In this document: positions 1,677-25,591 of the stretch, piece by piece
Position numbering within the stretch: position 1 is the stretch's first letter
How the letters are laid out: every line of letters starts with the position of its first letter
Source: Paraphysomonas bandaiensis
Taxonomy: Eukaryota > Protista > Chrysophyceae
Direction of reading: 5' to 3'
Length of the DNA stretch: 64,000 nt
NCBI GenBank assembly: GCA_965644295.1
Contig: CBFFRP010000431.1
Coordinates: 310,001 to 374,000, forward strand
Translations under genes and position numbers: made by a program
The notes under the pieces: model-generated
The model's database searches: none
Told to the model about the DNA's origin: nothing
The model's input: only the letters and a program-made list of their open reading frames with translations

Positions 1677-4600
1677 ATGAGACTCTTTCCTGCTACCCCA
1701 CCATCAAAACCGAAGTCAGCAGGAAGTACAAGAAGCCCTCGCAGAAAGAAACTGGCGGCATCAAGAGATTCTGTGTCTCCTCAACGGTAATCCTAGAATA
1801 TCCACATCATATGCGTTTAATGAGCTCGGTGTAGAAGCAATCACCATACCGAGGAAACATCTGTTAGCGCAACAGATGGTATGATTATATTAGAATATAC
1901 AGTACAGAAGAAAGACAGGTATATGATACTACAATAAGTTCGCTTCCTTATGTACAACGAAACAGGCGGCTCTCTTTCGTTATACGTGAGTTTCCAAGAA
2001 CAGCTCGCTTCTTTTCAATCGATATTGTAGTTCTGAAAACCAACCAGAAGTGGTGTGTCTTTGTTCCGGTAACAGGGAACTTTGACGAACTATTGCGCAT
2101 ATGGAGCATAACTCCTAAGTATGAGAATAAGAGGGCCCTAGGAGAGTGGTTGCTCAGGGTCACCAAGCTTGAATTCAGTGGTGATACCATCACTGGAGCT
2201 GTTTTTGACACTCCTGCATTGCACGAAAAATGTGTACAAGAAATGACGAAGTTGGCTCATATATTCGCAACAAAAATACAAGCCATTTATCGCACGTATA
2301 GAATACGAAAAATATATAGCAAGATTGGGCACTGGGATGGGGATGAGTCATCAAAACGAAAATTTCCGGCATCGTCGTTGTCCAGTTCAGCTAAGTACAG
2401 TATAAAATCTCATCCGCATACTAGAAAGTATCCTACTTCTCCTCGAAGGCCTATTATTCCAAGTGAAGATATACGTACTTATCGCTCTTTGCGGTTCACT
2501 GGTTCAGATGGTGACGACACCTGGGAAAACAGCCCTACTCTTCGGTCCTCCACTGCTGGAGCCGTTCCACGGCGTCATAAGCCAGAAAGAAAGACAATGT
2601 ATAGAGTTTCCAGATCCCCAGATAGAGAAGAGTATGTCCATTCGAAGCTGATGATGGTGGCTGGGGCATACTCTCATCCGCCGACTGAAAAAAAAGTCAC
2701 TCCTCCAGCAGCAAAGAAAAGAGCAGCCATGTTGAAAGAACTTCAAAATCTCAAGACTGAAATGAGTGGGGCTCTAGAGGCAATCGAAGTTGAATTGGAA
2801 CAATTTAAAATGGACTGTGGTCGATCTATACACTCGATGAGATCCACCTTAGTCACAGATCGAGTAGAAAGCACAGGTGCGATTGAGAATATTACATCGC
2901 CAAATGAGGATAGCATTTTTTTGAAAATGGAGATATCTCAACTGCAGCAAGAGATTAATAAATTAAGTACTGAATTGAATAAGCACCAGAAAGTGAATTT
3001 AATCAACCCGAAGCTGGAGGTCAACCCAGAAGACCCTGTTCAGTGTAGCGCGTGGACATGCATTCAGCAGGCCCTCACGAGATATGCCAGACGACGAAGG
3101 TTTAGGCATAGAGTATATTATCTAGTACGTGTAATAAACGGAGCTACGGGTGGAGATTTAATACGCGAAGCTCTTCGAAAAAGTGTAGAGAGCGGGAGCG
3201 TAATTCTGGCAAATTGTGTCACTAGCAGGATCATTGATATTGTCCGACGACTTGGACACGAAGAGAATAACCACATTTCAAACTACAAGCCGACCAACCA
3301 GATTGATGTCAGAATGATATGCAACACGCTGATTTCATTTATAAGCATTCGAACTATCATTCAAAATGGGCTGGAAGTTTTTAATGTGATATCGTCATTA
3401 CCTAAAATCTTTGGCATGGTAGATATGCTGGGAGAGGCTGGAGTGTGCGATTTTGTACTTCTTGTACTGCGTCGCCATACAGAGTCTGCAGATATTACCT
3501 TTAATGCACTCAAACTATATCTGTGCCTGGTTTGTGACTCCATACTTAACAAAGAACGGATGTCATCTCCAGAGTGTTGTGAGGTTTTGGGGCGTGCTAT
3601 GACAAGACACTGTAGAGATGACAGCGTGGTGGAAAAATCGGTTATGGTATTGTGCGAATTGACAAGAGACTATAGTGTGGAGATATTTGATACTTTTAAA
3701 TTAACACGTCTTTGCTCTTGCGTGATTAGTTGTCTTCAAGTACAGCATAAAAATTCTGGAATCGTTTTTGTGATTTGTCGGGCTATTTCAACACTCACTT
3801 CTAGTTCATATTATTTGAAGGAATTTTTTGCATCAGGAGATTGTTTCAAATTGTATATAGATTGCTTGCTGGAGAATTATGGTGATGAGAAGTGTTACCA
3901 GGAAGTGGCGGTGATGATTACCTCAATATGTGAAAAGAATGCTAGTGTATGGGCTACTGTTTCGACCGAATACGTGGCTGTTTCGTTACATTCTATACTT
4001 CGATTACCTGATGTAAGTGAAGAGGTAGTTAAGATTACTGTTACACTTATTTATAAACTGTGTACATTGGAATCTTTACGGCTACTGTTTCTTTCAAAAG
4101 GAGTGGATAAAATTTTGCTAGATTTGTGCGATAGAAGTTTCGCCAGTAGTACAGTCTCTGGGATACAGCAAGCTCGATTCCGATTGCTGAATCGTTCCCT
4201 TACCCTTTCAGTCCACACAGGCACCACTGATTGTCAAGATGCGTCTTTTAAGCCGGTCCATTTGTCCCACAGACAGAGGTATCCTCCGATGACTGCTACC
4301 CAACAGCCGATCAGAACTCCTCAGGTTCGTTTTATTGGTGACGGTACGTGGTCGACAGCTGAACAAAAGGCTGCAGTGATTATTGGTAGAAGTCTCTGGA
4401 AAGTCGCAAAGAGAAGTGTTTTTGGAGCGAGTACCAGTGAGACAATTGAATCAGTGCAGAGTTGTAATGACACTCTGCAGTTATTGCGGTATCTGCGTCT
4501 TTGTGTTGTCACCGGCAATGTGGAATTAGCGAGAATTACTATGGAGAGGATTAAATGCATTATCGAACATGATAAAGTGGGTACGATTCAATTACAAATA

Positions 4601-7600
4601 GAACTGTTGAGAAAGCTGAAACATTTATTTGATGTAATGCTTGCTTTTTTGAGCATAGCCGACGTACAGATATATGGCCTTGAAGTTATGAAACTTCTTC
4701 CTCATGATGCTTCTTCCATTGCTTTGGCAGGGACATCCGGGGCGTGTAACCTTGTGTTTGCTGTTCTAAAGCGCCATATGGAAAATGTAACACTGTGTAG
4801 AATGTGCTTGCACTTTTCTTGTGTTTTGGTTAATGATAGTCCTGAGAATCGACAATCTATGGTAGAGTTCGATAATTGCCATATTTTGTCCGAACTAATT
4901 GGTTCACATTATAACGATGCAAGTGTAACCAAAGAGAGCTGTCATCTAATACAACATCTGTGTAGAGATTCATTGCAGTGTCGTGATTATATGGCAGTAG
5001 CTGGTGTCAGCGGGCAAATTCTGGACTATTTAACCGCAAATTCACGCAATGAAGATATTGTTGGTTCATGTGTGCGTACTATTATCAGTCTTTGTGGACA
5101 ACTCAGTGAACGTAATTGCTCTATCCTGGTGTCAGATCAGAGTCTTCACATATATAGCAAGTTACTACTGAACAATGTCGCTGATGCAGGTATATGTAGG
5201 CACATCTGCAAGTTACTTGCCGAATTCTGCGGAAATGAATATAAACCCTTGACTGAGAGATTAGTGAAGAGTAATTTGGCATCTGACTTGTGCAATGTGG
5301 TAGATAAGTTGCGCAAGGATAGATCCGTTGCAACTGAAAGTGTGCACAGTGTTCTGACGTTAGTTGCATGTTTGCTGTATAATTGCAACGACTTCAAAGA
5401 AAGATTCCGCGATGCTGGACTTTCAGATCACATAACTTACTTCCTCTCGGGATGGACGCGCAATATAGTACGTGTAGCCAAGGTAATATCGGGTTATCTC
5501 TCGTCAGTGAAAGGGTCCCTGGCTTCAGTATCATCGACGAGTGGCAGAACTGAATTCAACGAGTTTGATAGAGCCAGGGCATCAGTATGCATAACGAGAA
5601 ATATATCCAGACATCATCAACAGCGGAAGTTGGGTCTCGCTAGAGCGAAAAGCTGCACCCTCTTAAGAAACATCAGTATAGCTCAAGATGCCGAAATTAT
5701 TACGGATGGATTACGTACTTCTGTACTTGCTGGAGATGACAAGCTAGCATTGGAATCCCTGAAGCGTGTGAATGCACTGACAGATTCAAATGGAAGTGGC
5801 AATGTTGACTCTCCAATTGCGAAATATATCCGTCGTAATCCAGTTTTGATGTTGGATGTCCTCTTTGCTTTTCTCAGCTTCCCTAAAATCCAAAAACTTG
5901 GACTAGCAACCTTGCAACGATTGTTTGTAAGCAACCGTGACATCGAAAGAGTGGGGACTGCTGGTGCATGTGTTCTAGCCTATCGTGTACTGCATCGGCA
6001 CAGGATGGACTCGGATTTGTGTGGCTTATATCTGTCGTACGGTTTGACGCTATGTAGACCCAGTGCTGCAAACAGGAAGTTGCTTGGAAGTATTGATTCA
6101 TGCCGTGTCTTAAAGAATCTTATGGTGGCTAATAGTGAAAACTCGGATATAATGAGTGCAGTGTGCTCACTTGTACGTGTTGCCACTGACTCATTGGAGT
6201 GTCGAGATAATGTATTTAACGCGGGTATAACCTGTCTGCTGCTTGATTACCTCGATAGTAATAGCCAAGACACTGTAATCGTTGGTTTTTGTGTTCGCAC
6301 TATGCTTTTTCTGTGTGCACAAAATCATTCTCATAGTTGGGATGTGTTGGTGTCGGACCTAGCGGTAAGAAAGTACTGTCACATTTTGTGCGGCGCGTCC
6401 ACGACATCTGTACATAAAGATATGTGCATGCTTCTCGTAGGGTTGACGAAATACGACACTGGGCGCACCTGTGATTTATTAACTCGAAATGACTTCCCAT
6501 CAAAGATGGCAACCCTTCTGAAATCTTTGATGTCTCACGATTTCGTGGTTTCCACTCTAATGCTAGTAGTTCATTTTACTATCCAGTGTCCAAGCATGCG
6601 AATCGCGCTTTTAAAAGCTGATATGCTCAGTGCATTGCGTCGGTTTGTAGGAAGTGCATGGAGTTACTCGATTCGCAAAACCGCTACAGCTGGAATTCAT
6701 CAGCTGGAACAGCTGGAATTGAATGACGAATTATCTTGTACTCAACATGACGAGGAAATTTCCGAGTTGTCCCATATTGAAAGACAGACGAAAGCTGGTC
6801 GTACCATAGCCACAGCTATCACTAGATTTGCCAGGGCTAGGCGCAAGCAGTGTGAAATAATAAAGGCTGGACGTCAGCTCCAAGAGTGTTTGCATTCGAT
6901 AAGTACAGCTAATGATGTTACACTTATTTTCGATTCGTTGAAGTTGTCTCTGAACGTAGGAAGTTGCATCCATGTTTCAAATTCTCTTTCACGTCTTCAG
7001 TATTTGTGCGAAACCAAGAATGTTGATATTGTCGATGTAAACCGAAATGTTGAGATTATTCTAGATGTGATGTCATCTTTTCTGAGTCGTACAGACATCC
7101 AGCAATGTGGGTTTAGCATACTGCAGCATCTGCCATGCCACGAAGAAGATGTCAAAAGGATTGGTGAACTGAAAGGATGCGAACTACTGAGGTACATATT
7201 GCAGCGCCATCGACTAGATTCGAGTGTGTGTGTGACAGCGCTTCGCTATGGGTGCCGTTTGACATGTGAGTGCGCGGAAAATCAATATTTAATGTGCAAC
7301 TCTAAAATGTGTGAAGTTCTTTCGAGTCTGATGACGACACATTCTCTCAATATATCTCTGATGAATAGCACAAACACCCTCATAAGTAATCTATGCAAGA
7401 ATTCCCAGGAAAATCGTGCACTGATGTGTCGTTGTGGTATTTGTGGGCATGTTTTGAAATGTTTGGTTAACCACTCGCGAAATGAAGAAGTGTGTCGTCT
7501 ATGTGCTGGTACGATCACCAGTTTATGCACGGAGAATGATATGAACAGGGCTATTTTCGGATCATCACAAAGCATTGCGATTTATTTTCAAGTTATCATT

Positions 7601-10600
7601 GACAACGATAAGAATCCCCAAATATGTAAGGTGATGTGCAATTTGTTGCAGAGCATGTGTCGCGATGGAAGAGGTATCGTTGAGGAAGAGTTGTGTCAAA
7701 GTGGAATTGCATGTGAAATTGCGTCATTTCTATCTGCACATGAAGCAATATTGCATCCCGACATCGCCCAGGCCGTATTAATGCTGGCTGTTCACTTTGC
7801 TGTAAATATTCCTGAGCTTAGATCTGAGTTGCTCTCTGCTGGTATGGTGGAGGTATTCAAGTTATATTCCTCGAAGAAATGGAGCGATAAAATTAGAAAA
7901 GCGGCTATACGTGCCTGTAAAAGTATATCCCCTCAGGAAAACATTCTAAAGTGTCAAAAAGATTTAGAACTAGCGTCAAAGGAAGATCAGGAAGCTGCAA
8001 ATAAAATTGCCCGGGCTGCGTACATGCATGTACATTACAAACGTGAAAGAGAAAAATTTAGTGAAAATCGAACAAAGCTTGAATATCATATTAACCATGT
8101 AGGAGCCTATTCAGATTGTGCTACTCTCTCTCAGTGCCTTCAGTTCAGTGTTGAGTGCAGTAGCACTGTGTTGGCGTCAAAGACCTTCGCGAGACTACGA
8201 GTACTTTGTACGGAGGGGGAAACCGAAATTTCTCTTGACTTTCTGAAATTAATATTGGATACCATGGTCGTGTTTTTAAGTCGTACAGATGTTCAGCGTA
8301 GCGGATTAAGTATTCTACAACAGTCGACTGGAGATAGTAGTCAGTATGAAATTATAGGTAGATTAGGGGCATGTGATGTAGTGAACCTGATCCTCCTGCG
8401 CCATTCCTCAGATACAAGCTTGTGCACTTCATGTGCATCATATGCGGCCAATTTAATTTGCGGTTCCCCGAAGAACATACCGCTGCTGTGTTCCCAAAAA
8501 AGCTGTGAAATTTTGTCACGCATTATGAAAGCAAACTTTGTAAATACTAAACTCATGCACCATATATGTGTCATCGTGAGTGAACTGAGTACGTACTCTG
8601 CGGCCTTTAGAGAAATGCTTGGATGCAGTGGTGTGTGTGAATGTTTGGTATCGTTTTTACGTGCGAATCCCGGTGATGAATACTGTGTGGGTCTTTGCAC
8701 GAAGACTATTTTAAGTTTATGTGTTGGCGAACACCCCAACATTGTTGCATTTTCGTCAAGGGAATGTCTGCATATTTACTCTAATATATTAACCGAAAGT
8801 AGATCTAACCCGAAAATATGCAAGCATATGTGTATGTTACTGGCAACAGTGTGTGGCAATGGTGAAGGTATGGTGAGCGAAAGTCTCTGTGGTTGTAGAA
8901 TTGCTGCAGTTATAGCGAAGTTTTTATCGGATGATGATGGGGAGCTAAGCAGTGATGCTGCCCAAGCCGTACTGATGCTGGCTGTTCACTTTGCTGTGAA
9001 TGTTCCTGTGATGCGGTCTGAGTTACTCTCTGCAGGTATGGTGGAGGTATTCAAGTCATATTCCTCTAAGAAATGGGCCGACAAGATTCGAAAAGCAGCC
9101 ATGTTAGGCATTCGAAAAATTTCCCCATCAGTGACACCTATAAAGACGGCTCACGAGTTGAAGGAAGAGGCTGCGCTACAGGAGAGTGCAGCGAAAATAA
9201 TAACTCGCAGTGTCAATTATCACATTGCAGTGAAGCGGAAGAAGGAGATAATCAATAAGGTCAAGGCTGGCAGACAATATCATTTGAGTCAAATTGCCAG
9301 CTGCTGTAATGCTGACTCTATTTTAAACTATGTAGATTTATCTGTTGAGTGTGGAGACCACCAACTGGCATCGAAGGCTATGTCAAGATTGGTAGATATA
9401 ACGAGAAAGTGTAGTTCTGAGGTTCAGGAGAGGATTATTACGAGGATGCGTATAATTTTGGGTGGGATGTTCTCATTTTTAAGTATTAGTTCCGTACAGC
9501 GCAATGGCTTGACCCTGATTCACCATGTGTCTCCTTACGGCGTCGATGTTGCTGGTATATTAGGGGAGCACTGCGGATGTGATCTGGTACACGGTATTCT
9601 TCGCAGGCATGTGTCAGATTATATGCTCTGTACTTCCGCGCTTCATTTGTGGTGTGCATTGCTAGATAATTGTTCCGCATATCGGATACCAATGTGCAGT
9701 CCGAGATCTTGTGAAATCATTGCCAATCTCATGAAAACTCATCATGCTAGGACGACGGTAGTAAATCAAGTGTGTGAATTGATCTCCAAATTGAGTTCTT
9801 ATTCATCGAGTAACAGAGATGTCCTTGGACAATGTGGTGTATGCGGTTTTGTTATTACCTATCTTATGAATAATGTTGAGAACGAAGCAGCATGTGAGGC
9901 ATGTATCTCTGCTATTTCGAGCTTGTGTCGAGAGTATCACGAGCAGAATCGACTTATTCTTGGATCGTCAAAGCATATTTCCCTCTATGTAGAGGTCATT
10001 CGGGCTAACGTGCAAAATTCTAAAATTGTACATCTGATGAGCAACATTATCGAGATGGTTTGCGATAGAAACGATGCATTTGCTGCTAAGGAAGTATTTG
10101 AGAGTGGTGTTACCATGGAATTATCCAATATATTGCGGATTTCTGAGGAGATCGAACAGGACTCACTTCCTTTAGAAACGGCGGAGGCACTTGTCGTTCT
10201 TGTCGCATTTATACTTGTCAACTGTCCCATTACGAGACCGCAGTTTGCCTCCGTGGGCATGTCGTATATATTAGAGCAATACACCTGCGATAAATGGAAT
10301 GATGTAACTATCAATTTTGCAAAACTTGGAATCGGCAAACTGTACGGACATCGAACTTCAAATGTCAGTGCTGATTTAAAATGTGGCAGTCTAAATTCCT
10401 TTCGAAATAGTAGAAACATGGTAGAAGAAGATCGAACAATTGAGAAGTGTGTCATTGGGTCAAGCAGTCCTGATGCATATTCATTCGCAGAACAGTCGCA
10501 AAGCGTCTGCGATGATAACGATTTCCATGGAGGTGACCTTATGCGGAGTACTTCTGCGATATATCATATATTCGGAATAGATTCTACCGTTACAAGTGAG

Positions 10601-13600
10601 TTTGAAGATTGCCATTCCAGTGGCATAGAGAATTGTGCTATTCTAAATGCAGGTGAAAATTTTTACTGTAGATGATCTGCTGTGTATTTTATCCGATATC
10701 AGTGAAATATCTGTATAATGTAAGTCTAATTTGTAGATGAAGTTGTTGGGCTGGGAGACAGTGAGAAAGAACTATTGGTTGCTGTGAACGCTGCCACAGA
10801 AGAAAAAGTTATGGAATACTTACGTCTGGCAGTAACCTCTGGAAATTCGAAATTAGGTGAGTGGGCCGTCGTACGAGCTCATCACCTTAGCAGTGAAAAA
10901 ATGAACAGCTGTATACTCTCTAAACCTCGAGTATTGTTGGACGTTATGTCAGCTTTTCTTGGGTTAACAAATACAATTATTGCCAGTAAGGGTTTATCGA
11001 TTTTACGACGACTATCTTTCGGTCCAGGCGATACAACTAGCATTGGAAATGCAGGTGGTTTTGAAGTGATAAGTGCGATATTACAAATTCACTCGTCGAG
11101 CAGTGAGCTATGTATGGCATGTATAGATTTTGGGATACAGTTAGCGGAGGAATGTGTTCAAAATCGAATACAAATGGTTAAAGAAGGAGTATGTGAAGCC
11201 ATAGTATGTGTCAGGAATACACACAAGAATAGAAATGACATTGTTGGTAGGTGCTTCGTATTTGTGAGTGTATTATGCGCCGGATGCTCACTTGCACAAC
11301 GAAGATTTGGTGATGTGAATATTCACGACCACGTCATAAAGCACCTATTAACCAACATCCCCGACGAAGCTGTGGTCCATATGTGCGCGAATACGATAAT
11401 AAGTTTATGCGAGGATAGAAATACAGAATGCTTCAAAGTTTTAGCGGCAGCGAAAAATCTTCGTTTGTATTTTAATATCATACGTAAAAGTTTGTCAAAT
11501 ATAAGTATATGTTCGGATATGATTCGGGTCCTGTCCGCCCTGTGTGAGGAAGGGGGAGCTGTTATAAACAAAGAGTTGTGCGAAAGTGGTATAGGGACGA
11601 TGTTAGCTTCAGTTCTTTTTGGCGAGAAAGTTGGCCTTGTAGCTGATATACAAGAAGGGTTTGTTCTACTAACGGTGCACATTGCTACACATATACCCAT
11701 TATCCGCCCTGAGTTAACCGCTTCCGGTATGATCAACATACTGCAGCAGTATACAACAAATGAATGGGGCAGACAGATTCGAACTAAAGCACGTGAGGGT
11801 ATCGAATTGTTGTTAGCGGGGGTTGATTTGGTTACAACCTCAGTTGAGGTTACCGACGACGAACAGTTAGTGCTAGAATCCTTGCAGATAGCAGCGCGGG
11901 GTTCCAATTATAATCTTGCAATGAAAACAGTTTCGAAGATTATTATGTTGCTCTCACCGCTGGATGGAAACGTGCGTAGTTTGCCCCTTGGATGGGCACT
12001 TCTTAAAAATCCAAATTTTGTTGTGGATGCGATAAATGCCTACAAGGATAGCACCGAGTTGGTGGAGAAAGGGCTTTCCATCCTACGAAAGCTACCATAT
12101 AGCCCCAATGACTACTCCAGAGTTGGGGCAGCTGGTTGCAATAACGTGGTATGCTCGGTGCTACGGGCACATGTATCTGATCGTGATGTGTGTGGTACAG
12201 CGTTGATATACGGAATGACACTCACTGCTCAGAGTCTGGTGAACCGCGTTCATATGGGAAATGAGGGCATATGTGAAATTGTATTAGAGGCATGCAGAGC
12301 GCACAAACTCGAATCAACTGTTATGGATAAGTGCTTTGGGATAATGTCAACGCTGTGTGCAGATTGTCCACAAAATCAAAGCAGGTTGGGAGAGGGACAG
12401 ATATGTGATGTGTTCATAAAGCATTTGGTAGCGCATATTGATAATTCTGAAATAATAAGGACTTGTACGCATGCAATTATAGCTCTCTGCAACCGACACA
12501 ATGACAACAGGAAATTATTTGCTTCAGAAAAGTTTATTCTGCTGTGCATTCATGTTATAAAGACCAATCGCACTTCCCTTGACGTGTGCACGAGTATGTG
12601 TACAGTGATGACCAATTTGTTTGGATGTACAGATGAAATCGATTTAATTTTATGTCAGAGCGGAATCGCCCAGGAATTGTATGAAGTCCTGACAGATAAG
12701 GATGATAATAAGCTTGCTGCTGGTGTTGCATGCGAGATACTAGCAATGGTTGCCCATTTTTTGCAGCATGTTCCATGTATGCGATCTGAATTTGCGGCCG
12801 CTGGAATGGTGAGTGTGCTGAACATGTACCAAACTCGCGGAAATGATATGAGGACACGGGAGAGTGCTGACATTGGGATGCATTACTTAACTTCGAGGAT
12901 TGAATTTTTGCTTGATATTATTGATACGTGTATAGAACCGAATCTAATTTGTGAGTGCTTGAAAGTCGCAACAGGTAGCCGTAATGTGGTGCTTGGCTTA
13001 AGAGCAGTGCACAGAATTTACAACCTTACTGATTGTGACGACAGTTCGAACCCTGTAAATAGGGAATTGATATCGACTGTGCTGCAGTACTCTAGCTTAC
13101 TAACTAGTACAATGATAAACTTCTCACTGCGTGAAGACCTCCAGCAGAAAGGTATAGCGATATTACAGCGCCTACACTATGGCCCTGGAGATGTGGAGCG
13201 GGTTGGATCAACCGGTGCTGTTACAGCAATACGAAACATATTTCAAAGCTACATTACCAATGGGACGTTGTGTTCGGAATGCCTTGCTTATGGGACGAAA
13301 ATATCCTCGATGAGTTTAGGAGTGCGGATAGAAATGGGAACTGAAGGTATATGCGAGTGTGTTTGGAATGTATGCACAACACACAAGAAGGACTTAAAGC
13401 TAGTCGCCTTGTGTCTCAGAATGTTTTGCGCACTATGTACAGACTGTGTAGACAATCAAATCAGAATAGGCAGTGTTGAAACTTGTGCTCTAGTGTCGGC
13501 TCTGTTGAACGATAATATTCACAACGAATGGATGGTTGGTCTATGCTGTCACACTATTGCAAGTTTGTGTTCTGGGAGTAATGAGAAGATTTGCGATCAT

Positions 13601-16600
13601 TTTATCGATGGTGCAAGTCTACGGAAATATGCCATGATAATACAGTCCAATACCGACAATGCAAAAATCTGCAAGCACATGTGTTTGTTATTGTTATCAC
13701 TATATGGTAAGGGAGAGGGCGTGGACAGGGCACTACGGGAAAGCGATCTTGCAGCTATTCTCACGGATATCTTGTCTACGTCCGGTAGTGGAAGTACCCT
13801 GACTGCCGATATTGCCAATACTCTTGTTATGTTTGTAGTGGATTTTATTTCAAATGCTCCAGTCATGAAGAAAGAATTTATATCAGCTGGGCTAGTCAGT
13901 GTGTTGCGGCGTTACACCGACGACGACTTCAGTGATGCGACCAGAAAGGCAGCTCACATTGGAATGAAGAAATTAGTTCCACGGATTGGTGTCCTTATCG
14001 ACTCTGTGCAGGGTACTCACAGTATAAAAGTTATCATTGAAGGGTTAGAAGTTGCTATGGAATATCGCTGCCGTGATTTGGCGGCAAAGGCTATGTGTCG
14101 ACTAAGTGAACTTTTAGCCTGTGTGTCAACTGAAGATAAAAATGAAGAGAATTTATTACGACGGGAAGTTCTTCAAACTATTAGTGTTATCATAAAAGTG
14201 GCGACGGAATTCATCGACGCTATAAATGTAGTTGAGAGTGCACTTGATGTCATACAGCAACTCTCTGAGTCATCTGATGACATTCGTGCAATTGTTTCGT
14301 GTGGTGGATTCGTGTTGCTACGGTCAATATTGGACACACATGCCTCAATCGCTACTATATGTTCTGCATGTCTTGTATATGGCACACACACTGCAAGTGA
14401 CAGTATCAGAAATCGAATTGATATGGGAAAGTCAGGATGCTGTGAATCTCTTTTAGGTGTATGCCGCGCACACGAAAATAATGTGGAGATGATGAGAAAG
14501 TGCTTGCATTATATGTCGGTGCTCTGCACAGATTGTCCGGATAACCAAGATGCTTTTTGCAGTGGAGGTGCATGCGGGGTTGTCATCAAACACCTCATTT
14601 CTAATATGGCGGAGGTGTCTGATGTCAGTATTTGTGCCCAAACCATATTGAGTTTATGTTCTAATATGCATCTTGGAAACCGCAGGGTATTAATTTCTGA
14701 GAAGCATATGCAGTTGTATATTAAAGTAGTTCGCTTGTCCTCGCACAGTTCAAAAATATGTAAAATTATTTGTGCGCTTTTTGTTGGCCTATGTGGATCA
14801 AGTGATAGTGTTACAGACGAAGTACTACCTGTGTGTGGTGTCGCCACTGAACTGCGGGATATGTTGTCTATAGAAAATACTGAAAAACTAAGCTCTGGTG
14901 TTTCACAGGGTTTGGTTATGCTTGTTGTACACATGGCGGTGAAAATTCCATCGATGCGCCCTGTGCTGCTGTCTGTGGGGATGACTAATGTTCTACGTCG
15001 CTTTACTCTGCCGGAGTGGAATGATGTCGTTCGCCATGCAGCTGATACTGGTATTCGTAAACTTATTCCGCGTATGGCGATGCTAATGGACACCTTAAGT
15101 GAATCCACTGATCCATCTTTCCTTACTGAATGTTTGCAGTCAGCAGTAGAATGTGGGTACCAACCTCTTGCCGAGAAAGCGATAGGTGTCATTGAACATA
15201 TGATTAGTAGAAGCAACCCTAAGATCTTATCCTCTATATGTGATATACGTGAAGTGGTGTGTACGCCTGTGTTAATGGATGTGCTTTGCACTTTTTGGTT
15301 CAATACCAAAATTTGTGACAAATGTTTTTCTATCATCACGGAATATCCGTATACATCTGGGGATGCGGAGATGATTATATCATTGGGGGGGGCAGACAAG
15401 TTTCGGTCTTTGCTTGAAAAATTTCTCACAGATTCTAGATATTGTCCTCTCTCTTTGTCGTATGGTTCGGCATTGTTATCGGATAGTCTGTCGAACAAAA
15501 TCGCGATGGGACAGCATAATATTTGTGAGTGTGCAGTTCTCGTGTGTCAAATGCATGCGAATGATGCACACATTATGACTAAGGGCTTGTCTATAATATG
15601 CGCTCTATCAACTGAATGTGTGGAGAATCAAAGGAAGTTTGGACGCGAAGATTTTGCTGAGGTTGTATTGACGCACTTGTCTAGGCACAAGCTTGATAGT
15701 CTTGTTGTGGAACTTTGTGCTCGTACTATTTTGAGTATTTGCGCTGGTGGTAAATGTGAGAATCATTTACACGTATTCTTGTTACCGTCGTATATTCGGG
15801 TGTATTTCGATGTTATACGATCCAGTGCTACAAACGCCAAGATATGTAAATGCATGTATTCGGTCGTTGTTGTACTCTGTAAAAACGAGAAAACCAATGT
15901 CATTGACAGTTTGCGCAGTAGTGGTATTGCAAGCGACATAGCCAGTTTTTTGCGATTTTCTATCGATGCAGAAAAAGTTCGAGAAGTGGTACAATTAGCA
16001 GTGATGCTAGTAGTGTATCTTATTGTGAACTATCCCTCACTGGCTGGCGATTTCATTGACGTTGATATGGTTAATGTGTTGAAGTTGTACATTTCAGGCA
16101 TTTGGAGTGAAAAGACTAAAAAGGCAGCGAGAACTGGAATCAGTAAGTTGATTGCTGAAGCTAGTCGTGTCGTCACACTTGATGCTGATCGTGAAAATCC
16201 TGAACCTAATTCTATAGTTGCTACATTAGCAATGGGGTTCCCAACTTCTGATTTGTCATCCGACTCACTGCAATCTGACTCACAATCTACAGACATTCCC
16301 TACTTGATTTTATGTCTAGAAAAAGCGGTTGTTGAGAACAGTGTTGACCTAGCACTAACTTCGGGCTTAAAAATATATGAGTTGCTATCGTCACAAGACG
16401 TAGGTCCTGAAGAATTGCTTGCCGTGGTAAAAGCGACAGCAAAAGTTATAGAAAAGTTTATAAAAAATACGGACTTGTGTAAACTCTGTTTAGACTTACT
16501 GTCTCGAACGGAACATGACAGTCAGATGATTGAAACTTTTCATTTAGCCCCCATTGTAGCATCCGTGCTTGACACACACCAGTCTGACCCCAGTGTGTGC

Positions 16601-19600
16601 TGTGCATGTGTGGATTATGGAATATGTTTGGCATCGATAGATGTGAGTGTGCGGCTTTTGTTTGGTGAACATGGTGTTTGTGATTGCGTTTTGGCTGTAT
16701 TTCGAAGGCACAGCAACATCGCTGCTGTCGCTGATAGATCTCTCAGGTTCATATGTGCGCTATGCAGAGATTGCCCGTCAAACCAGGATAAACTTGGGAA
16801 CGGCGGTGCTTGTAGTTGTGTTATCGAATGTCTGTCGGAATATATAACAAATAGCAATGTTGTGATCTCAGGTACGCATGCCATTGCTTCGCTTTGTGCG
16901 GGGCATGGCATCAACAACAACCGTTATACAATGACTTCTACGAGGCCTTTACAGCTATACATGGAGGTGATTCGTATGAACCCCATGAGTGGGGATACTT
17001 GTAAAGGTATCTGTTCACTTCTTGTGGCACTTTGCGGTAAGGGCGAGGGTAAAGTTGGAGAGCAAATGATGGATAGTGGTATATCGGACGCGTTGTTGGT
17101 TATGCTGTCATGTACTGATTCCGATCGAGCATTTAGCATAGATGTTCTGACCAATCTGGTTATGTTAGTGGTTCACTTTGTCCTTAATATTCCTGCGATG
17201 ATGTTTAATCTGGCATCAGTTGGTATGGCAGGTGTTCTTTGTGAATATACCTCGGCCCCATGGAACGAAACTGTTCGAAAAGCAGCTGCCGCAGGTGTGA
17301 AGAAATTGACCAGTTTGGAGTCAAGGGAACCGCTAACTAAACCATTCATTCCCCATTCTGTGGAGTCAAATTTAGCGACTACGGATTCTTCGTTGCGTCC
17401 AGAAAGTACACTTAATCAGCTACCTTCAATATATCCCAGCAGTTATCAACAAGACATTGGTCTACCTGGAAGTGATGATCGACGAAACAATGACCATGTG
17501 CTGCAGCCAGTCCATAGTAATTCTATGACATCGTCGGATGTGAGCTCTTTGTTATCATTTGTAGAGATAGCCGCAAATGAAAGCGATGTGGATGCAGTGC
17601 TTCATTTGTTCCGTCGACTACGATCTATGTTGCTAGACTCGCCTAATGGAAAAAATATTTCTGCGATACAAGAAGCATCAGGAAAAAAGTTTGTAATCTT
17701 ACATGCATTAGCCTCATATCTTAACAACAACGAGCTTATAAAAACTGGGTTGGAAGTTATGCAGATAATCTCCCTCCATATTGGGGATGGTGAATCATTT
17801 AGCCTGACAAATGAAATTGACATGATTTGCTCCATATTGAAACAATACGTAGTCGATGCAGATATATGCTCGGCTTGTGTGAAATATTGCTCTGTACTAG
17901 TAGCCGAACAAAAGGAAATATGCGTTAACATGGGTAAAGCTGGTGTATGCAACGCTGTTGTGGATGTCATGAGAGCGCAGCTAGAAAAAACTGGAGTTGT
18001 TCTTTGTTGTCTTCCACTTGTACGTGTGCTCTGTAACGAATGTGATGACAATCGAAACAGGTTCGGTGAGTGTGGTTTGTGCAGTCTAGTAATCAAATTT
18101 ATGCTTCCAAATTTAGCGGATGAACATATTGTATCCACGTCTTTGCAAACGGTGGTGGCTCTCAGCGCAAATCAAAATGCGATTAACAGCAAAGTATTGA
18201 CGTCTTCAAGTCATTTTCAATTGTATATTCGTGTCCTTCGCCTACATTCGACGAACCCTGTGATATGCGATTGTATATGTACTCTTATGATCGCTTTGTG
18301 CCGAAGTGACCAAGAAGGTGTTGGTGCTGATATAGTAAAAAGTGGAATTATTCGTGAGTTGGCAGAACTGCTTACCCGATTTGTGAACAGAAGTCACTTT
18401 GATCCTGAAGTCACGTCAGCAATTGTGTTACTTGTAGTACATTTCGTTGTAAACGTTCCTATGACAGTTTCCGAGTGCTTGTCTGTTGGCATGATCGACG
18501 TGCTTCGTCCCTACACAACTGGTGATTGGAACAACAAGGTTCAAAATGCTGTTAATATTGCCATTCAGAAACTTTCATCGCGAGATGAAAATATATGTAA
18601 TACTTTGCGGGTGATACTTCCAGAAGAACAACCTGGATCTCGTGATATGGACGTCACAGAAGCTACCAACGAGGGTGGTGCTGCTGTTGATACCAGTCAA
18701 CATACGGGGTTTCAAGAAGTTGCTATACCTTCAGAGTTACTTTCTAATATCAGCACTTCTACAGATGTCTTGTTCTTGTGTGATTGCTTCAGGAGTGCTG
18801 CCACGAACAATAATGAGGTTATCGCTGATAGTTGTGCGAGCCGGATTCGAGCACTTGTCTCGGGTACAGGACAAATCAATGGGAATAAAGTCGTTAAATC
18901 CTTGGCTGCCGTTAGAAGTGAACTCTTTGCGGCATTTACAGAATTTTTGGAGAGCGACTCTGTAACTTCGAATGGGCTATTTATACTGCATATGTTACTG
19001 AGTCCTTCTGCAGAGACTAGCGCTGTGGTATCAAACCATGAAGTCATGTTTGTCACTTCTGCGTTGCAATTAAATATGTTTTCATCTTACTGCTCTCTAA
19101 TACTCGAGTGTGGTACATTACTAGCTGATAGTGGAGAAGAGAGCCGAACTCGACTCTGCTCAAACGAGATGTGTAAAAGTGTTGTCCAAGTATTACGAAC
19201 TTACCAGAGTAACTGGGATATCATGTTGAAATGCTTCAACCTGATATGTGCACTATGTAGAGGTGATTTGGTTAATCGTGACAAATTCGGCCATTCAGGA
19301 GTAGCGACTGAAATGATTGGTTACTTGAGAAATAATATGGCAAATGAAGTGATAGTTAGTAATTGCCATCGAGTCATTACTGTACTTTGTACAGAATGCG
19401 TGTTAAATAGGGAAAAATTTGTTGCCGATATCAACCTATATGTCGATATTATCAAAGGTAATGTTAAAAATGCACGCCTGGTTAAGGGCACATGCGCTTT
19501 GCTTGTTGTTGTGTGTGGTAAAGGTGAAGGTAGCGTTGGCGAAGAGATGATAGAGAGTTCTATTTGCCAAGAGTTTATCAGACTCCTCAATGATCATGCA

Positions 19601-22600
19601 AGTGGAGATCAGTTGAATCGAGATGTGGCTACCAGCCTACTAATGTTGGTGGTTCACTTCGTTGTCAATATTCCCATATTGACCCCTGTGCTGGAGTCAG
19701 CGGGAACAATCGATGTTCTTCGGCGTTATACAACTAGTGATTGGAATGATATTGTTCGAAAAGCTGCCTCTATAGCTATCAATAAGTTGTCGGCGTTTGC
19801 ACTGTCCTCATGGGATAAGAAGTCAAAAGAGGATTTCCGATCAAATAGCCCCGGGATAAATTCAATGGAAACAAGTGAACAAGACACGAAATCTATCTCA
19901 CCTGTATCAAATGTACCATCCACTTTTCCTACTGCTAGCACTGTTGCCCATGGGCCTTGTAAAGTTGACGGAGTTGTCGCGGATGATGAACGACAAATGC
20001 AGCCAACTGGAGTAGGACATGACAACAGTAGTGGAACTGCGCAGAGTTTTGACACTGGAGATAATGCACCGAATGCTTGTGACGTGGACAATGCCAAAGA
20101 CAATTTACGTCCTGAATCAGTCCCGAACAGGAACGAGACAACTATTGAGGTGACTGATGATACCTCTCATTTTCAAAAAGAGCCTGCAACTACCAAGCGC
20201 GATTCTGTTGTGGCAGGTGTTTTATCTGTTCTAAAGGTGGCAGTTGAAGAAAGGAATTTGGGTAAATCAATGTCTAGTTTGAAAGAAATAAGGTCTGTGA
20301 TGTCAGATACCGATTTATCTTATAGAGAATCTTATCGCGAAGGAATATATATATCCCAAGGCCTAATCATTAGTTGTCTATCTTTATTTTCTGACAATAC
20401 GTCCCTTGTTGTAGTGGGTTTAGATGTGCTGCGAATGATCTCATCTAATGAAATCTCAGCTGATGAAGCGAAATTACTTCGCGTTATTCTACAGATTCAT
20501 ATTTCCAACAGAGTATTATGTTCTCGAATTTTGTTGTATGCAACAGCTCAGGCCACGAAAGTTGTCACTAATCGTATCGAAATGGGAAAGACCGGTATAT
20601 GTGAGGTCGTTGCAGATGTGTGTGCACGTTACAAAGATGATAAAGAAATTGTGATTTGGTGCTTGCAATATGTTGTCGCCATGTGTACTGATTGTTCGAG
20701 TAATGAAATTATATCAGTACAGTGTATTAAAAATATCGTTGCATCATTGGAGGTTCACAAATCGTGCGAAAGTACTATTAGTACCTTCGCCGAAGGCTTT
20801 ATTGCTCTTTGTACTGGGGCGAACTCTCAAATCCTGACGTTTTTCTCAACCTCACCTACGCTTGAGTTGATTTTTAAAGTTCTCAAATGTAATGGCGGTA
20901 GCGTAACGGTATGCAAAAGTCTTTGTAGTTTTTTAGTTTTGCTATTCGATAGAGGCCGCACGTTGATTAACGACAACATACAGTATGTGACAGTTTCGAA
21001 AGGGATAGTGGACGTGCTTTCTGATCACAACTGTACAAGTACTTCTGAAGCAGCTACAACTGTTGTCATGATGGCTGTATATGTCGTATTAACTATGCCA
21101 ACTATGCACCCTGCTTTGGTTTCTGTTGGTGTGATAGACGTTTTTCGCCGATTCACTACCAATGATTGGAGTAGTGCAGTGAAAAAAGGCTGTTACGTCG
21201 CCATAAAGAAACTGTCGATGCTGAGAATAGTATCTAACGCATCCAGCGTAAATGATAAGCAGAGTGAGTCAAGAGTACATCGTACAGATGAAAATGAAGT
21301 GGTAGAAGAAGTACCTGATGCAATTGATGAATCATCCGACACTTCGCATTTACTGTCCTATCTAGGAAAAGCTATTGATAGTAATGATCTGGATTTGGCT
21401 ATGTTTTCAATGAGAAGAATTCTGGCTATAGTTTCCAATTCTGGAGATCTGAAATCAGAGAATTTACTCGCAGTGAAGGAAGTTGCTAGTCAAGTGAACA
21501 CTATATTTAGTGTTGCATCTGTTTTTATTGAAGATGCAAATGTTGTGACAGCATGTTTGGATGTTCTGCAGCAATTGGAATATGACGACGCGGATATCGA
21601 TGCCATCGATAGTAGTGGCAAGCTTGGTGTAATAAGTGCTATATTGCAGGAGTACGTATCAGATGGTGCGATATGTTTACTTTGTATGGATGTAGCGATC
21701 AGGCTAGCCGCAGAAAGTGAGACAATTCAGCTAGAGCTAGGTGATAAAGGGATATGCGAGAGTGTCATAGAAGTGTGCCAAGCTCACGAAAATGATAACG
21801 GCGTCGTTGAGAAATGTATCGTACTTGCTACCGAACTGTGCACTTCTTGCAGAGATAATCGTGACCGATTTAGCGAAATCTCTACTTTGAGCGACGCTGC
21901 TAAGCTTGTGATTAATGCTGCTGTGGATTATCCTGAGAAGGGTGTTATTCATGCCATTAAAGTTCCGTATGTAGAGGATTCAGTAATTTCTACATCTGCA
22001 ACTAGCCAGATGGGCAGTGGTGCCAACGAAGTGGTGAAGGAAGTAGCCGATAGGTCAGTGAATGTGAACGACAGAGTGGACAGTAAACACTTGGTCGATA
22101 AAGCATCTGAAAATGTAACAAATGCCATGAGTGCAACCAATGAAACCTCTAGGGATGCTGTTGCTAAGTCGCTTGCTACTAATACACATGAGTTACCATC
22201 GGTCCCGAGTGAGAAAAATGTGACTGAATTATCTAATGCAATTGATGAATCAACCGACACTTTCAAGGAAGAAGCCGATAGGTCAGTGAATGTTAGCGAC
22301 AGAGTGGACAGTAAACACTTGGTCGATAAAGCATCTGAAAATGTAACAAATGCCATGAGTGCAACCAATGAAACCTCTAGGGATGCTGTTGCTAAGTCGC
22401 TTGCTACTAATACACATGAGTTACCATCGGTCCCGAGTGAGAAAAATGTGACTGAATTATCTAATGCAATTGATGAATCAACCGACACTTTCAAGGAAGA
22501 AGCCGATAGGTCAGTGAATGTTAGCGATAGAGTGGACAGTAAACACTTGGTCGATAAAGCATCTGAAAATGTAACAGATGCCATGAGTGCAACCAATGAA

Positions 22601-25591
22601 ACCTCCAGGGATGCTGTTGCTAAGTCGCTTGCTACTAATACACATGAGTTACCATCGGTCCCGAGTGAGAAAAATGTGACTGAATTATCTAATGCAATTG
22701 ATGAATCAACCGACACTTTCAAGGAAGAAGCCGATAGGTCAGTGAATGTTAGCGATAGAGTGGACAGTAAACACTTGGTCGATAAAGCATCTGAAAATGT
22801 AACAGATGCCATGAGTGCAACCAATGAAACCTCCAGGGATGCTGTTGCTAAGTCGCTTGCTACTAATACACATGAGTTACCATCGGTCCCGAGTGAGAAA
22901 AATGTGACTGAATTATCTGATACAATTGATGAATCAACCGACACTTTCAAGGAAGAAGCCGATAGGTCAGTGAATGTTAGCGACAGAGTGGACAGTAAAC
23001 ACTTGGTCGATAAAGCATCTGAAAATGTATCAGATGCCATGAGTGCAACCAATGAAACCTCTAGGGATGCTGTTGCTAAGTCGCTTGCTACTAATACACA
23101 TGAGTTACCATCGGTCCCGAGTGAGAAAAATGTGACTGAATTATCTAATGCAATTGATGAATCAACCGACACTTTCAAGGAAGAAGCCGATAGGTCAGTG
23201 AATGTGAACGACAGAGTGGACAGTAAACACTTGGTCGATAAAGTATCTGAAAATGTAACAGATGCCATGAGTGCAACCAATGAAACCTCTAGGGATGCTG
23301 TTGCTAAGTCGCTTGCTACTAATACACATGAGTTACCATCGGTCCCGAGTGAGAAAAATGTGACTGAATTATCTGATACAATTGATGAATCAACCGACAC
23401 TTTCAAGGAAGAAGCCGATAGGTCAGTGAATGTGAACGACAGAGTGGACAGTAAACACTTGGTCGATAAAGCATCTGAAAATGTATCAGATGCCATGAGT
23501 GCAACCAATGAAACCTCTAGGGATGCTGTTGCTAAGTCGCTTGCTACTAATACACATGAGTTACCATCGGTCCCGAGTGAGAAAAATGTGACTGAATTAT
23601 CTAATGCAATTGATGAATCAACCGACACTTTCAAGGAAGAAGCCGATAGGTCAGTGAATGTGAACGACAGAGTGGACAGTAAACACTTGGTCGATAAAGT
23701 ATCTGAAAATGTAACAGATGCCATGAGTGCAACCAATGAAACCTCTAGGGATGCTGTTGCTAAGTCGCTTGCTACTAATACACATGAGTTACCATCGGTC
23801 CCGAGTGAGAAAAATGTGACTGAATTATCTGATACAATTGATGAATCAACCGACACTTTCAAGGAAGAAGCCGATAGGTCAGTGAATGTTAGCGACAGAG
23901 TGGACAGTAAACACTTGGTCGATAAAGTATCTGAAAATGTATCAGATGCCATGAGTGCAACCAATGAAACCTCTAGGGATGCTGTTGCTAAGTCGCTTGC
24001 TACTAATACACATGTGTTACCATCGGTCCCGAGTGAGAAAAATGTGACTGAATTATCTGATACAATTGATGAATCAACCGACACTTTCAAGGAAGAAGCC
24101 GATAGGTCAGTGAATGTTAGCGACAGAGTGGACAGTAAACACTTGGTCGATAAAGTATCTGAAAATGTATCAGATGCCATGAGTGCAACCAATGAAACCT
24201 CTAGGGATGCTGTTGCTAAGTCGCTTGCTACTAATACACATGAGTTACCATCGGTCCCGAGTGAGAAAAATGTGACTGAATTATCTGATACAATTGATGA
24301 ATCAACCGACACTTTCAAGGAAGAAGCCGATAGGTCAGTGCATGTTAGCGACAGAGTGGACAGTAAACACTTGGTCGATAAAGTATCTGAAAATGTATCA
24401 GATGCCATGAGTGCAACCAATGAAACCTCTAGGGATGCTGTTGCTAAGTCGCTTGCTACTAATACACATGAGTTACCATCGGTCCCGAGTGAGAAAAATG
24501 TGACTGAATTATCTGATACAATTGATGAATCATCCGACACTTCGCATTTACTGTCCTATCTAGGAAAAGCTATTGATAGTAATGATCTGGATTTGGCTAT
24601 GTTTTCAATGAGAAGAATTCTGGCTATAGTTTCCAATTCTGGAGATCTGAAATCAGAGAATTTACTCGCAGTGAAGGAAGTTGCTAGTCAAGTGAACACT
24701 ATATTTAGTGTTGCATCTGTTTTTATTGAAGATGCAAATGTTGTGACAGCATGTTTGGATGTTCTGCAGCAATTGGAATATGACGACGCGGATATCGATG
24801 CCATCGATAGTAGTGGCAAGCTTGGTGTAATAAGTGCTATATTGCAGGAGTACGTATCAGATGGTGCGATATGTTTACTTTGTATGGATGTAGCGATCAG
24901 GCTAGCCGCAGAAAGTGAGACAATTCAGCTAGAGCTAGGTGATAAAGGGATATGCGAGAGTGTCATAGAAGTGTGCCAAGCTCACGAAAATGATAACGGC
25001 GTCGTTGAGAAATGTTTTCGACTCGTTTGTGAGCTCTGTGATGATTGTCCCGAGAATCAAGACCGCTTTGGGCATCTTTCGGTTTCTAGTCATCTTGTGA
25101 AGTACTTGATCGGTAATATGAAAAACGAGTCTGGTGTTGGAATTTGTGCTCGTACCATTATGAGTCTCTGTGCTGATAATCACCAACATAACCGAAGTGT
25201 GCTTGTGTCGCGCAAACACCTTCGACTCTACACTCATATAATTCGCAAGAACTGTAAGAATTTGAAAATAACACGCTTTGTTTGCACTCTACTTGCTGGA
25301 TTATTTAAAACAAGCGATGAATATGGTGACGAGGAACTGGTCGAAAGTGAGATTGCCTACGATTTAGCTTCGCTGTTGTCTGCTTATTTTGAAAAGTCTT
25401 CACTGACTAAAGAGGTAGCCCAGGCTGTCGTCATTCTTGTTGCGCATTTTGTGATTAACATTCCGGACATGAGATACGAGCTGGTGGCTGCAGGAATGAT
25501 TAAATTGCTAAGCCGTTTTAGTGGAAGCGAATGGAGCAGTAATGTAAGAAAGACTGTGCCGGTAGCGATCCGTATGTTGGAGAAAGTGTAG
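1677..25591 (+). CDS. Giant (~7,900 aa) IQ-motif / armadillo-like tandem-module protein; spliced gene joining ORFs 2093-10675 and 10775-25591
   Basis: Phase-1 intron 10653-10736 (GCA G|gtgaaaat...aatttgtag|AT GAA GTT) joins the two ORFs in frame, and the same ~350-400-aa module recurs on both sides. The frame is open upstream to ~1868. Probable first exon starts at ATG 1677 (MRLFPATPPSKPK...) with donor at 1787; the exact 5' splicing is unresolved. Canonical IQ motif FATKIQAIYRTYRIRK near 2264. Cys-rich ARM-like helical repeats (e.g. 'LCRDCPSNQDKLGNGGACSCVIECL'). Confidence 0.8.
10653..10736 (+). other. Spliceosomal intron (84 nt) linking the two giant ORFs
   Basis: GT donor, branch-like 'tctaat', 'ttgtag' acceptor. 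Removing it skips the TGA at 10673 and keeps the frame. Confidence 0.8.
21321..21817 (+). repeat. Copy 1 of a ~497-bp direct duplication (first half of an ARM-like module)
   Basis: Appears identical to 24519-25015 (offset 3198); the protein IDESSDTSHLL...GVVEKC is repeated verbatim. Confidence 0.95.
22037..24542 (+). repeat. Coding tandem array: 11 x 228 bp (76-aa unit, S/T/D/E/N-rich)
   Basis: Unit starts aaggaag(t/a)agccgataggtcagtg at 22037, 22265, 22493 ... 24317; only a handful of positions vary. Confidence 0.97.
24519..25015 (+). repeat. Copy 2 of the ~497-bp direct duplication
   Basis: Matches 21321-21817; this copy continues into a complete final module. Confidence 0.95.

Follow-up and report, generated by a model that had tools for sequence, protein, structure and literature searches.

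A predicted giant protein of Paraphysomonas bandaiensis with 16.5 armadillo domains behind a head, an IQ helix and a putative coiled coil

Gene model and the joining of its exons

The window analysed here is a stretch of 64,000 nt from the chrysophyte Paraphysomonas bandaiensis (contig CBFFRP010000431.1, positions 310,001 to 374,000 of the forward strand), and all coordinates given without a contig name count from its first letter. Positions 1677-25591 of the plus strand were read as one gene model of three exons, with a coding sequence of 23,652 nt that corresponds, by codon count, to a protein of 7,883 amino acids (aa), close to the approximately 7,900 aa announced in a preliminary description of the same DNA. 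Most of the model is carried by two long plus-strand open reading frames (ORFs) lying in one frame, ORF1 at 2093-10675 (2,860 aa) and ORF2 at 10775-25591 (4,938 aa). All searches and structure predictions were performed with individual exons, which were concatenated only to count codons and to check that the frame is open.

Exon 1 (1677..1786) starts with the ATG at 1677 and encodes, in 36 codons and 2 nt, a basic, proline-rich N-terminal peptide beginning with MxxFxATPPSKPK. It is followed by intron 1 (1787..1965), of 179 nt and 36.9% GC, which runs from GTAATC to AAACAG with its donor GT at 1787 and its acceptor AG at 1964-1965, and exon 1 joins position 1966 in frame. Exon 2 (1966..10652) encodes the head, the IQ helix, the putative coiled coil, the first six modules (M1-M6) and a linker of 93 aa; its frame is open from 1868 and contains no ATG upstream of the conserved head, the conservation of the protein starting at about 1967. 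Upstream of the paralog C239, we found a homologous peptide that also begins with MxxFxATPPSKPK and ends at a GT donor of the same phase, and the C239 acceptor occupies the same place with respect to the conserved head as the acceptor of intron 1. Since the position and the phase of this intron are kept in C239, the ATG at 1677 was taken as confirmed. The peptide start MxxFxATPPSKPK (1677-1720) is thus common to two paralogs whose identity is otherwise only 40-60%, and it may be a linear motif. N-myristoylation of this conserved peptide was considered and ruled out, there being no Gly at position 2.

Exon 2 would be joined to exon 3 (10737..25591), which codes for modules M7-M17 and an acidic repeat and ends with the stop codon at 25589-25591. 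The segment between them, intron 2 (10653..10736), comprises 84 nt in phase 1 (GTGAAA...TTTGTAG), and the letters around its two borders, here marked by slashes, are ...AATGCAG/GTGAAAAT...TAATTTGTAG/ATGAAG.... Its GC content is 28.6% compared to 40-42% in the flanking 300 nt, and stop codons are present in all three of its frames. The preliminary description had linked the two ORFs through an intron of this length, and the common frame, the GT..AG ends, the AT-richness and the stops in every frame are those predicted for such a join. Sixteen residues encoded upstream of the first in-frame ATG of ORF2, at 10811, align to positions 11-26 of the module profile presented below, and the segment between the acceptor and this ATG would therefore be coding. 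ORF2 alone would give a headless protein, and all the other family genes of this genome have a head. Twelve other members of the family have 1-36 aa behind their last module, and here a single residue follows M17. On these genomic features, we consider it most probable that a single gene is present, joined by the splicing of intron 2.

The alternative is that two genes follow one another, a complete six-module member of the family ending with the TGA at 10673-10675 and then, from the ATG near 10811, either a separate headless gene of 11 modules or an untranslated partial duplicate. Several observations speak for two genes or weigh against the single-gene model. The paralog C239 stops 5 aa beyond its orthologue of M6, and a stop at 10675 would mimic this ancestral gene end; M7-M17 form a distinct, later-arising clade; and no fragment of the product of this gene, or of the products of its paralogs, was found in protein databases by word-based and profile searches. 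The case for joining, made from genomic sequence, is indirect but consistent. Against two genes, however, the distance from stop to ATG is only 135 nt, and coding-like sequence homologous to the modules runs upstream of this ATG up to the AG acceptor. Moreover, the 84-nt segment combines canonical splice ends and a low GC content with a frame-preserving length, and the acidic, Ser-rich stretch of 93 aa after M6 resembles the internal linkers of the protein, unlike the C-termini of the family. Finally, an open frame of 14.8 kb would not survive in an untranslated duplicate. Two genes are, on this evidence, improbable.

The armadillo modules

A module profile was built from eight obvious copies and run against the gene. 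It identified 17 copies, six in ORF1 and, in ORF2, ten complete ones and one half module (M16), the very numbers counted in the preliminary description. The modules are 336-377 aa long, share 20-39% identity with M4 and together account for about 5,980 of the 7,883 residues. Their C-terminal consensus reads VMLVVHFxxNxPxxRxxLxSxGMxxVLxxYxxxxWxxxxRKxAxxGIxKL, and the motif quoted beforehand from the letters reappears in the profile alignment. The modules had also been called Cys-rich and armadillo (ARM)-like; cysteine amounts to 4.1% of the protein, and Pfam Arm, AlphaFold2 (AF2) and fold searches agree on the ARM character.

The layout of the array changes along the chain. Within exon 2, M1 (3104..4153), the most divergent copy, is followed by M2 (4424..5530), M3 (5621..6742), M4 (6848..7960), which was the copy taken for folding, M5 (8048..9154) and M6 (9242..10372). 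In exon 3, modules M7 to M11 (10763-11809, 11792-12901, 12905-13999, 13994-15079 and 15083-16165; span 10763..16165) abut with 0-1 residue between them. Modules M12 to M15 (16268-17323, 17516-18589, 18731-19825 and 20216-21223; span 16268..21223) are separated by acidic, Ser- or Pro-rich linkers of 47-130 aa. The half module M16 (21305..21877) covers profile positions 12-200, and M17 (24500..25585) closes the array. From M11 to M17 as a whole, the spacing consists of linkers of 27-130 aa, acidic or Ser/Pro-rich, to which an acidic repeat of 836 aa is added. The beads-on-a-string arrangement proposed earlier is therefore a suitable image for much of the length, namely M11-M17 with their linkers and repeat. 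Likewise, the protein does consist of ARM super-modules, 17 in number, but a head, an IQ-type helix and what is likely a coiled coil are also part of it.

We obtained an AF2 model of M4 from an alignment of the 17 paralogous modules. The prediction was confident, with a predicted local distance difference test (pLDDT) of 91.5 and a predicted template modelling score of 0.87, and exhibited 25 helices arranged as 8 three-helix repeats, that is, an 8-repeat ARM domain. In the gene, Pfam Arm (PF00514) reached 29.2 bits, above its cut-off of 20.6. The best Foldseek matches of the M4 model were designed ARM proteins, importin-alpha, APC and SmgGDS, with E values to ARM proteins of 5e-7. Comparison with VIA gave a Z of 27.8 to the C1 central-pair ARM protein (7n6g_1F, PF16), about 26 to importin-alpha, 25.4 to beta-catenin and 24.9 to the ARM domain of LRRK2; over PF16, importin-alpha, designed ARM proteins, beta-catenin and LRRK2 ARM the range is 24.5-27.8, and these matches are effectively tied. 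From the model, we conclude with high confidence that each module would be an 8-repeat armadillo domain of ordinary size, as in importin-alpha or PF16. The unusual feature is the presence of 16.5 such domains in one chain. Zinc binding by the conserved cysteine residues was judged unlikely, these residues being placed within helices in the AF2 model.

Importin-alpha and PF16 (SPAG6) have the same module size and the same right-handed superhelix of 8 ARM repeats. Importin-alpha has an N-terminal importin-beta-binding (IBB) domain and 10 ARM repeats with a groove for nuclear localisation signals, whereas the present protein has 16.5 domains per chain, no IBB domain and only a weak sequence likeness to it (E 0.002 for the module profile against PDB sequences). 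The usual Asn of helix 3 is, by our own reading of the module consensus, not conserved in the modules, where Cys or Ser is common at this place. In the same search of PDB sequences, the ARM domain of LRRK2 matched over its residues 124-308 with an E of 3e-11, SmgGDS with 1e-9, and an 'anonymous antigen-1' of Toxoplasma with 1e-9. The LRRK2 ARM domain and SmgGDS/RAP1GDS1 are thus the best sequence-level relatives among solved structures, with a likeness that spans about 185 residues of generic ARM repeats. Against the Pfam family ARM_LRRK2 (PF23744), ORF1 scored 25.5 bits for a cut-off of 26.2, and the paralog C239 scored 46.6 bits. The gene, unlike LRRK2, codes for no ankyrin, LRR, ROC-COR or kinase parts. 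A Pfam search of both ORFs found no ROC-COR GTPase, kinase, IBB or PH domain, which sets the protein apart from LRRK2/ROCO, importin-alpha and GAC. Similarly, ARM_ARMC5 (PF24768) gave 50.2 bits over four stretches together, under its cut-off of 79.9, and with no BTB domain present the protein is not an ARMC5.

The 'anonymous antigen-1' entries (PDB 8c4a and 8bt6) presumably correspond to the glideosome-associated connector (GAC) of Apicomplexa. GAC, too, is a protist giant that consists almost entirely of ARM repeats, and ARM-repeat giants as such are already known. In contrast to GAC, which forms one continuous array of about 53 repeats with a C-terminal PH domain, the protein described here has discrete 8-repeat modules with linkers, an N-terminal head, IQ helix and coiled coil, and no PH domain.

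One reading of these sequence relatives is that the protein acts as a multivalent effector or chaperone of small GTPases (Rab, Rho, Rap), one per ARM module, instead of as a general scaffold. The ARM domain of LRRK2 and SmgGDS/RAP1GDS1, its nearest solved relatives, bind small GTPases, and the nearest Atlas clusters to the module, ARMC6, STKLD1 and RAP1GDS1, include the last of these. The likeness is, however, that of generic ARM repeats, and importin-alpha, designed ARM proteins and PF16 fit the fold equally well. We therefore regard an effector of small GTPases as unlikely.

Head, IQ helices and putative coiled coil

The N-terminal region has the same order in this gene, in its paralogs and in the relatives found in databases, as deduced from the comparison of 260-625 N-terminal residues: a head, an IQ motif, a variable basic Ser/Pro stretch, two heptad-like segments and an IQ-like helix before the first module. 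The head domain (1967..2266; about 100 aa) was modelled by AF2 together with the IQ motif, with a pLDDT of 92.1. The predicted topology is beta-beta-beta-alpha-alpha-beta-beta, with three strands, two helices and a hairpin, after which the chain continues straight into an IQ-bearing helix of more than 40 residues (residues 82-125). No Pfam match, no PDB sequence match and no Foldseek match below an E of 0.03 were obtained for the head. Foldseek rows of a PX domain and of XRCC4/SAS-6-like proteins were dismissed as noise (probability ≤0.33, TM ≤0.36). VIA-wide, the model of head and IQ reached at best a Z of 5.0, under the stated background of 7-8, and the matches barely covered its beta-rich first half.

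The IQ-type motif (IQxxxRxxxxR; 2267..2317) lies on this long helix. The calmodulin-binding IQ motif has the form [FILV]Qxxx[RK]Gxxx[RK] on a helix, and the family-wide pattern in the relatives is [IVL]QxxxR[GR]xxx[RK]. From the sequence, we consider an IQ motif at this place to be plausible but not formally established. It is followed by a basic Ser/Pro-rich region, probably disordered (2330..2722; 27 Lys and Arg, 20 Ser and 14 Pro in 131 aa), which differs in length and sequence among the members of the family, and by the two heptad-like segments (2723..2992, with the segments at 2723-2815 and 2915-2992), a motif kept in the paralogs and in the database relatives.

Further IQ-like basic helices were noticed before each of the first six modules, at 3059..3112 (M1), 4370..4423 (M2), 5579..5632 (M3), 6794..6847 (M4), 7994..8047 (M5) and 9188..9241 (M6). 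The first one is nearly identical in the relative P0002, and the common form before M1-M6 is AAxxIxRxxxxxxxx[KR][KR]. No IQ-like helix is present in M7-M11. In the relatives, an equivalent helix precedes many modules, and some of these are canonical IQ motifs, for example IQRxxRKxxxRR in P0009. Because such helices precede M1-M6 and many modules of the relatives, the ancestral repeat unit probably combined a single IQ-type helix with a single ARM domain.

Light-chain-binding IQ helices and helical repeat regions also occur in ASPM, in other IQ-plus-ARM proteins and in the lever arms of myosins, where a globular domain runs into the IQ helix. The present protein differs in having no CH, ASH or motor domain and in the alternation of IQ helices with whole ARM domains.

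It could also be supposed that the protein is a component of the flagellar apparatus or of the axoneme, of the nexin-dynein regulatory complex (N-DRC) or central-pair type; a flagellar or cytoskeletal scaffold had been suggested in the preliminary description. The C1 central-pair ARM protein heads the VIA matches of the module, chains of the N-DRC and of the 96-nm repeat are the best, though weak, matches of the head plus IQ (Z 4.0-5.0), and one Atlas neighbour with DRC11_N scored 0.80. All these hints are nevertheless within noise, the Z of the module being tied with that of importin-alpha and that of the head lying below background, and an Atlas score under 0.9 is a mere lead. An axonemal component has, in our opinion, little probability.

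Family, growth of the array and proposed role

The protein is not a singleton; it is the largest of seven paralogs and belongs to a wider family. When the genome (62.6 Mb, 669 contigs) was searched, the module profile found full-length modules on five further contigs, and the head profile found exactly seven genes, namely this one, C239, C125, C588, C134 and a pair on C185. The paralogs carry 2-5 modules each, compared to 17 here. Across these seven genes, Pfam detected no catalytic or targeting domain in any member.

Outside this genome, 1.84 billion representatives were searched exhaustively with the profile; of the 4,622 matches, most cover only profile positions of about 65-290 and correspond to generic ARM arrays. 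A subset has full-length modules, among them P0002, a protein of 4,471 aa with 9 full and 2 partial modules, and P0003 and P0004, with 7 modules in each. Head and full-length 365-aa modules occur together in the seven genes of this genome and in at least 17 clusters of the databases. All the database members that were looked up come from environmental assemblies of ENA, JGI or Logan and are unnamed or labelled 'hypothetical protein'. The relationship is distant: P0002 and exon 3 share just 22% identity across 2,975 aligned positions. A word-based search among proteins of 2.7-8.7k aa, with the 1,100 residues at the start of exon 3 as query, returned one weak match, and the same type of search with M6 and its tail among proteins of 258-822 aa returned none; both were nearly empty because the sequences of the family have diverged too far to share 5-mers. 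In the exhaustive profile search, no cluster reached scores like those of this gene or its paralogs, no related locus was detected in metagenome contigs scanned with closer alignments, and no description of this architecture was found in the published literature. The preliminary description did not recognise the architecture as a known family, and the relatives found are indeed all unnamed metagenome ORFs. Judged by literature and database names, the super-modular ARM array with head, IQ helix and predicted coiled coil is an undescribed eukaryotic family.

The history of the array was deduced from a maximum-likelihood tree of 74 modules (quick IQ-TREE run, LG+G4). Modules M1, M2, M4, M5 and M6 pair one-to-one with m1-m5 of C239 (support 97-100), with M1 placed beside m1, M2 beside m2, M5 beside m4, and M6 beside m5, the last module of C239. 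Modules M7-M17 group in a clade restricted to this gene (support 97), and the extra modules of P0002 form a clade of their own. Since the extra modules are in separate clades, the giant size arose independently here and in P0002, by serial duplication of whole modules. An ancestor with 5-6 modules thus duplicated, C239 being the other copy; the eleven modules M7-M17 came later, by tandem duplication within this gene, and very recently the last linker underwent amplification into acidic units.

These units form the acidic repeat, which consists of 11 tandem copies of a 228-nt (76-aa) unit at 22037..24544. The copies are 97-99% identical, with a net charge of -9 per unit; the unit is rich in Ser, Thr, Asp and Glu, and its end copies the first residues of a module. 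The copies vary at 15 sites, 3 synonymous and 12 non-synonymous, a ratio close to what neutrality would give in a young array. A second recent event is a duplication of 510 nt, 21308-21817 in M16 and 24506-25015 in M17, with 99.4% identity. Outside this block, M16 and M17 are homologous but diverged, a pattern that suggests gene conversion or a nested duplication. The repeat and this duplication, like intron 1, the N-terminal region and the IQ-like helices of M1-M6, were absent from the preliminary description. A listed minus-strand ORF of 863 aa (21949-24540) lies wholly within the 228-nt repeat; it is an artefact of the repeated stop-free unit and not a gene. That the 3' region with its 11-unit repeat and 510-nt duplicate is partly an assembly artefact, such near-identical units and a 99.4% internal duplicate being typically mis-joined by assemblers, or that the gene is a decaying pseudogene, is very improbable, given that the units show a structured pattern of shared variants and stay in frame (228 = 3 x 76), that the flanks of the repeat are unique and that the whole 23.6-kb coding sequence has no stop.

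Some features of the other family genes and of their surroundings were also recorded. In the C125 paralog (C125:114443-114447), a single in-frame TAA separates a frame of 1,965 aa from a frame of 431 aa that contains a further full module; no obvious intron surrounds it, and it may represent a genuine stop codon, a readthrough site, a lesion in a pseudogene or an error of sequencing. On the same contig, an open frame of 3,515 aa adjoins the family gene (C125:95638-106182, minus strand), and its only Pfam signal is a sub-threshold SPRY. The two family genes of C185 (55869-60437, minus strand, and 62082-67822, plus strand) are placed head to head, with about 1.8 kb between their heads (at 60389 and 62178), an arrangement that suggests divergent genes with a shared promoter region. 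Other very long frames, of up to 6,589 and 6,366 aa, were found on contigs C416, C281, C367, C217, C172 and C66, with many matches to the central ARM repeats of the module profile only. The 6,589-aa frame of C416 is likewise a Cys-rich ARM array of comparable size; however, it and the other giant ARM frames have generic repeats (profile positions of about 65-290), with neither the 365-aa period nor the head. Giant generic ARM arrays are unusually abundant in this genome. In the window itself, an ORF of 793 aa (26249-28630, minus strand) is convergent with the giant gene.

Taken together, we consider it rather likely that the locus is one three-exon gene encoding a giant multivalent ARM scaffold of the head-IQ-coiled-coil family. 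For the structural description of the protein, our confidence is high. The protein would be cytosolic and the largest member of its family, with a short basic peptide, the head, the IQ helix, a disordered basic stretch, the coiled coil and the array of ARM super-modules (about 365 aa each) in this order. Two chains would be paired by the coiled coil, with a partner and calmodulin-like light chains attached to the head and the IQ helices. The 16.5 ARM domains would provide a long multivalent docking platform, of about 100 nm if extended by our own estimate, made of three stretches, in which M1-M6 have helical linkers, M7-M11 are packed closely and M12-M17 form flexible beads with acidic spacers. 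We propose this mechanism of a scaffold with light chains only tentatively.

Two points count against such a scaffold. With Pfam IQ (PF00612), the motif scored 15.9 bits here (E 0.011) and 19.6 bits in the relative P0009, for a cut-off of 20.3. The heptad-like segments, which likely form a coiled coil, were read by eye from the sequence. For docking by the ARM domains, small GTPases would be a concrete candidate class of ligands. A bolder form of the scaffold reading would be a new class of giant tether regulated by calcium or light chains, in which a head of new fold anchors the dimer, each super-module combines a calmodulin-like subunit with a client-binding ARM domain, and reach and valency are tuned by adding or removing modules, independently here and in P0002; this form remains speculative and has a low probability.

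Giant ARM-repeat proteins are common in this genome and among protists generally, which limits the significance of this one. If the single gene model holds, the protein would rank with the largest proteins predicted for a free-living protist, and its growth clearly illustrates the duplication of entire domains of 365 aa instead of single repeats of 42 aa. The alternation of IQ helices and ARM domains leads to a hypothesis of calmodulin or light-chain binding that can be tested at the bench. An unnamed family with a head of no recognised fold, recurring in unidentified environmental eukaryotes, points to a part of protist cell biology that is still unexplored.

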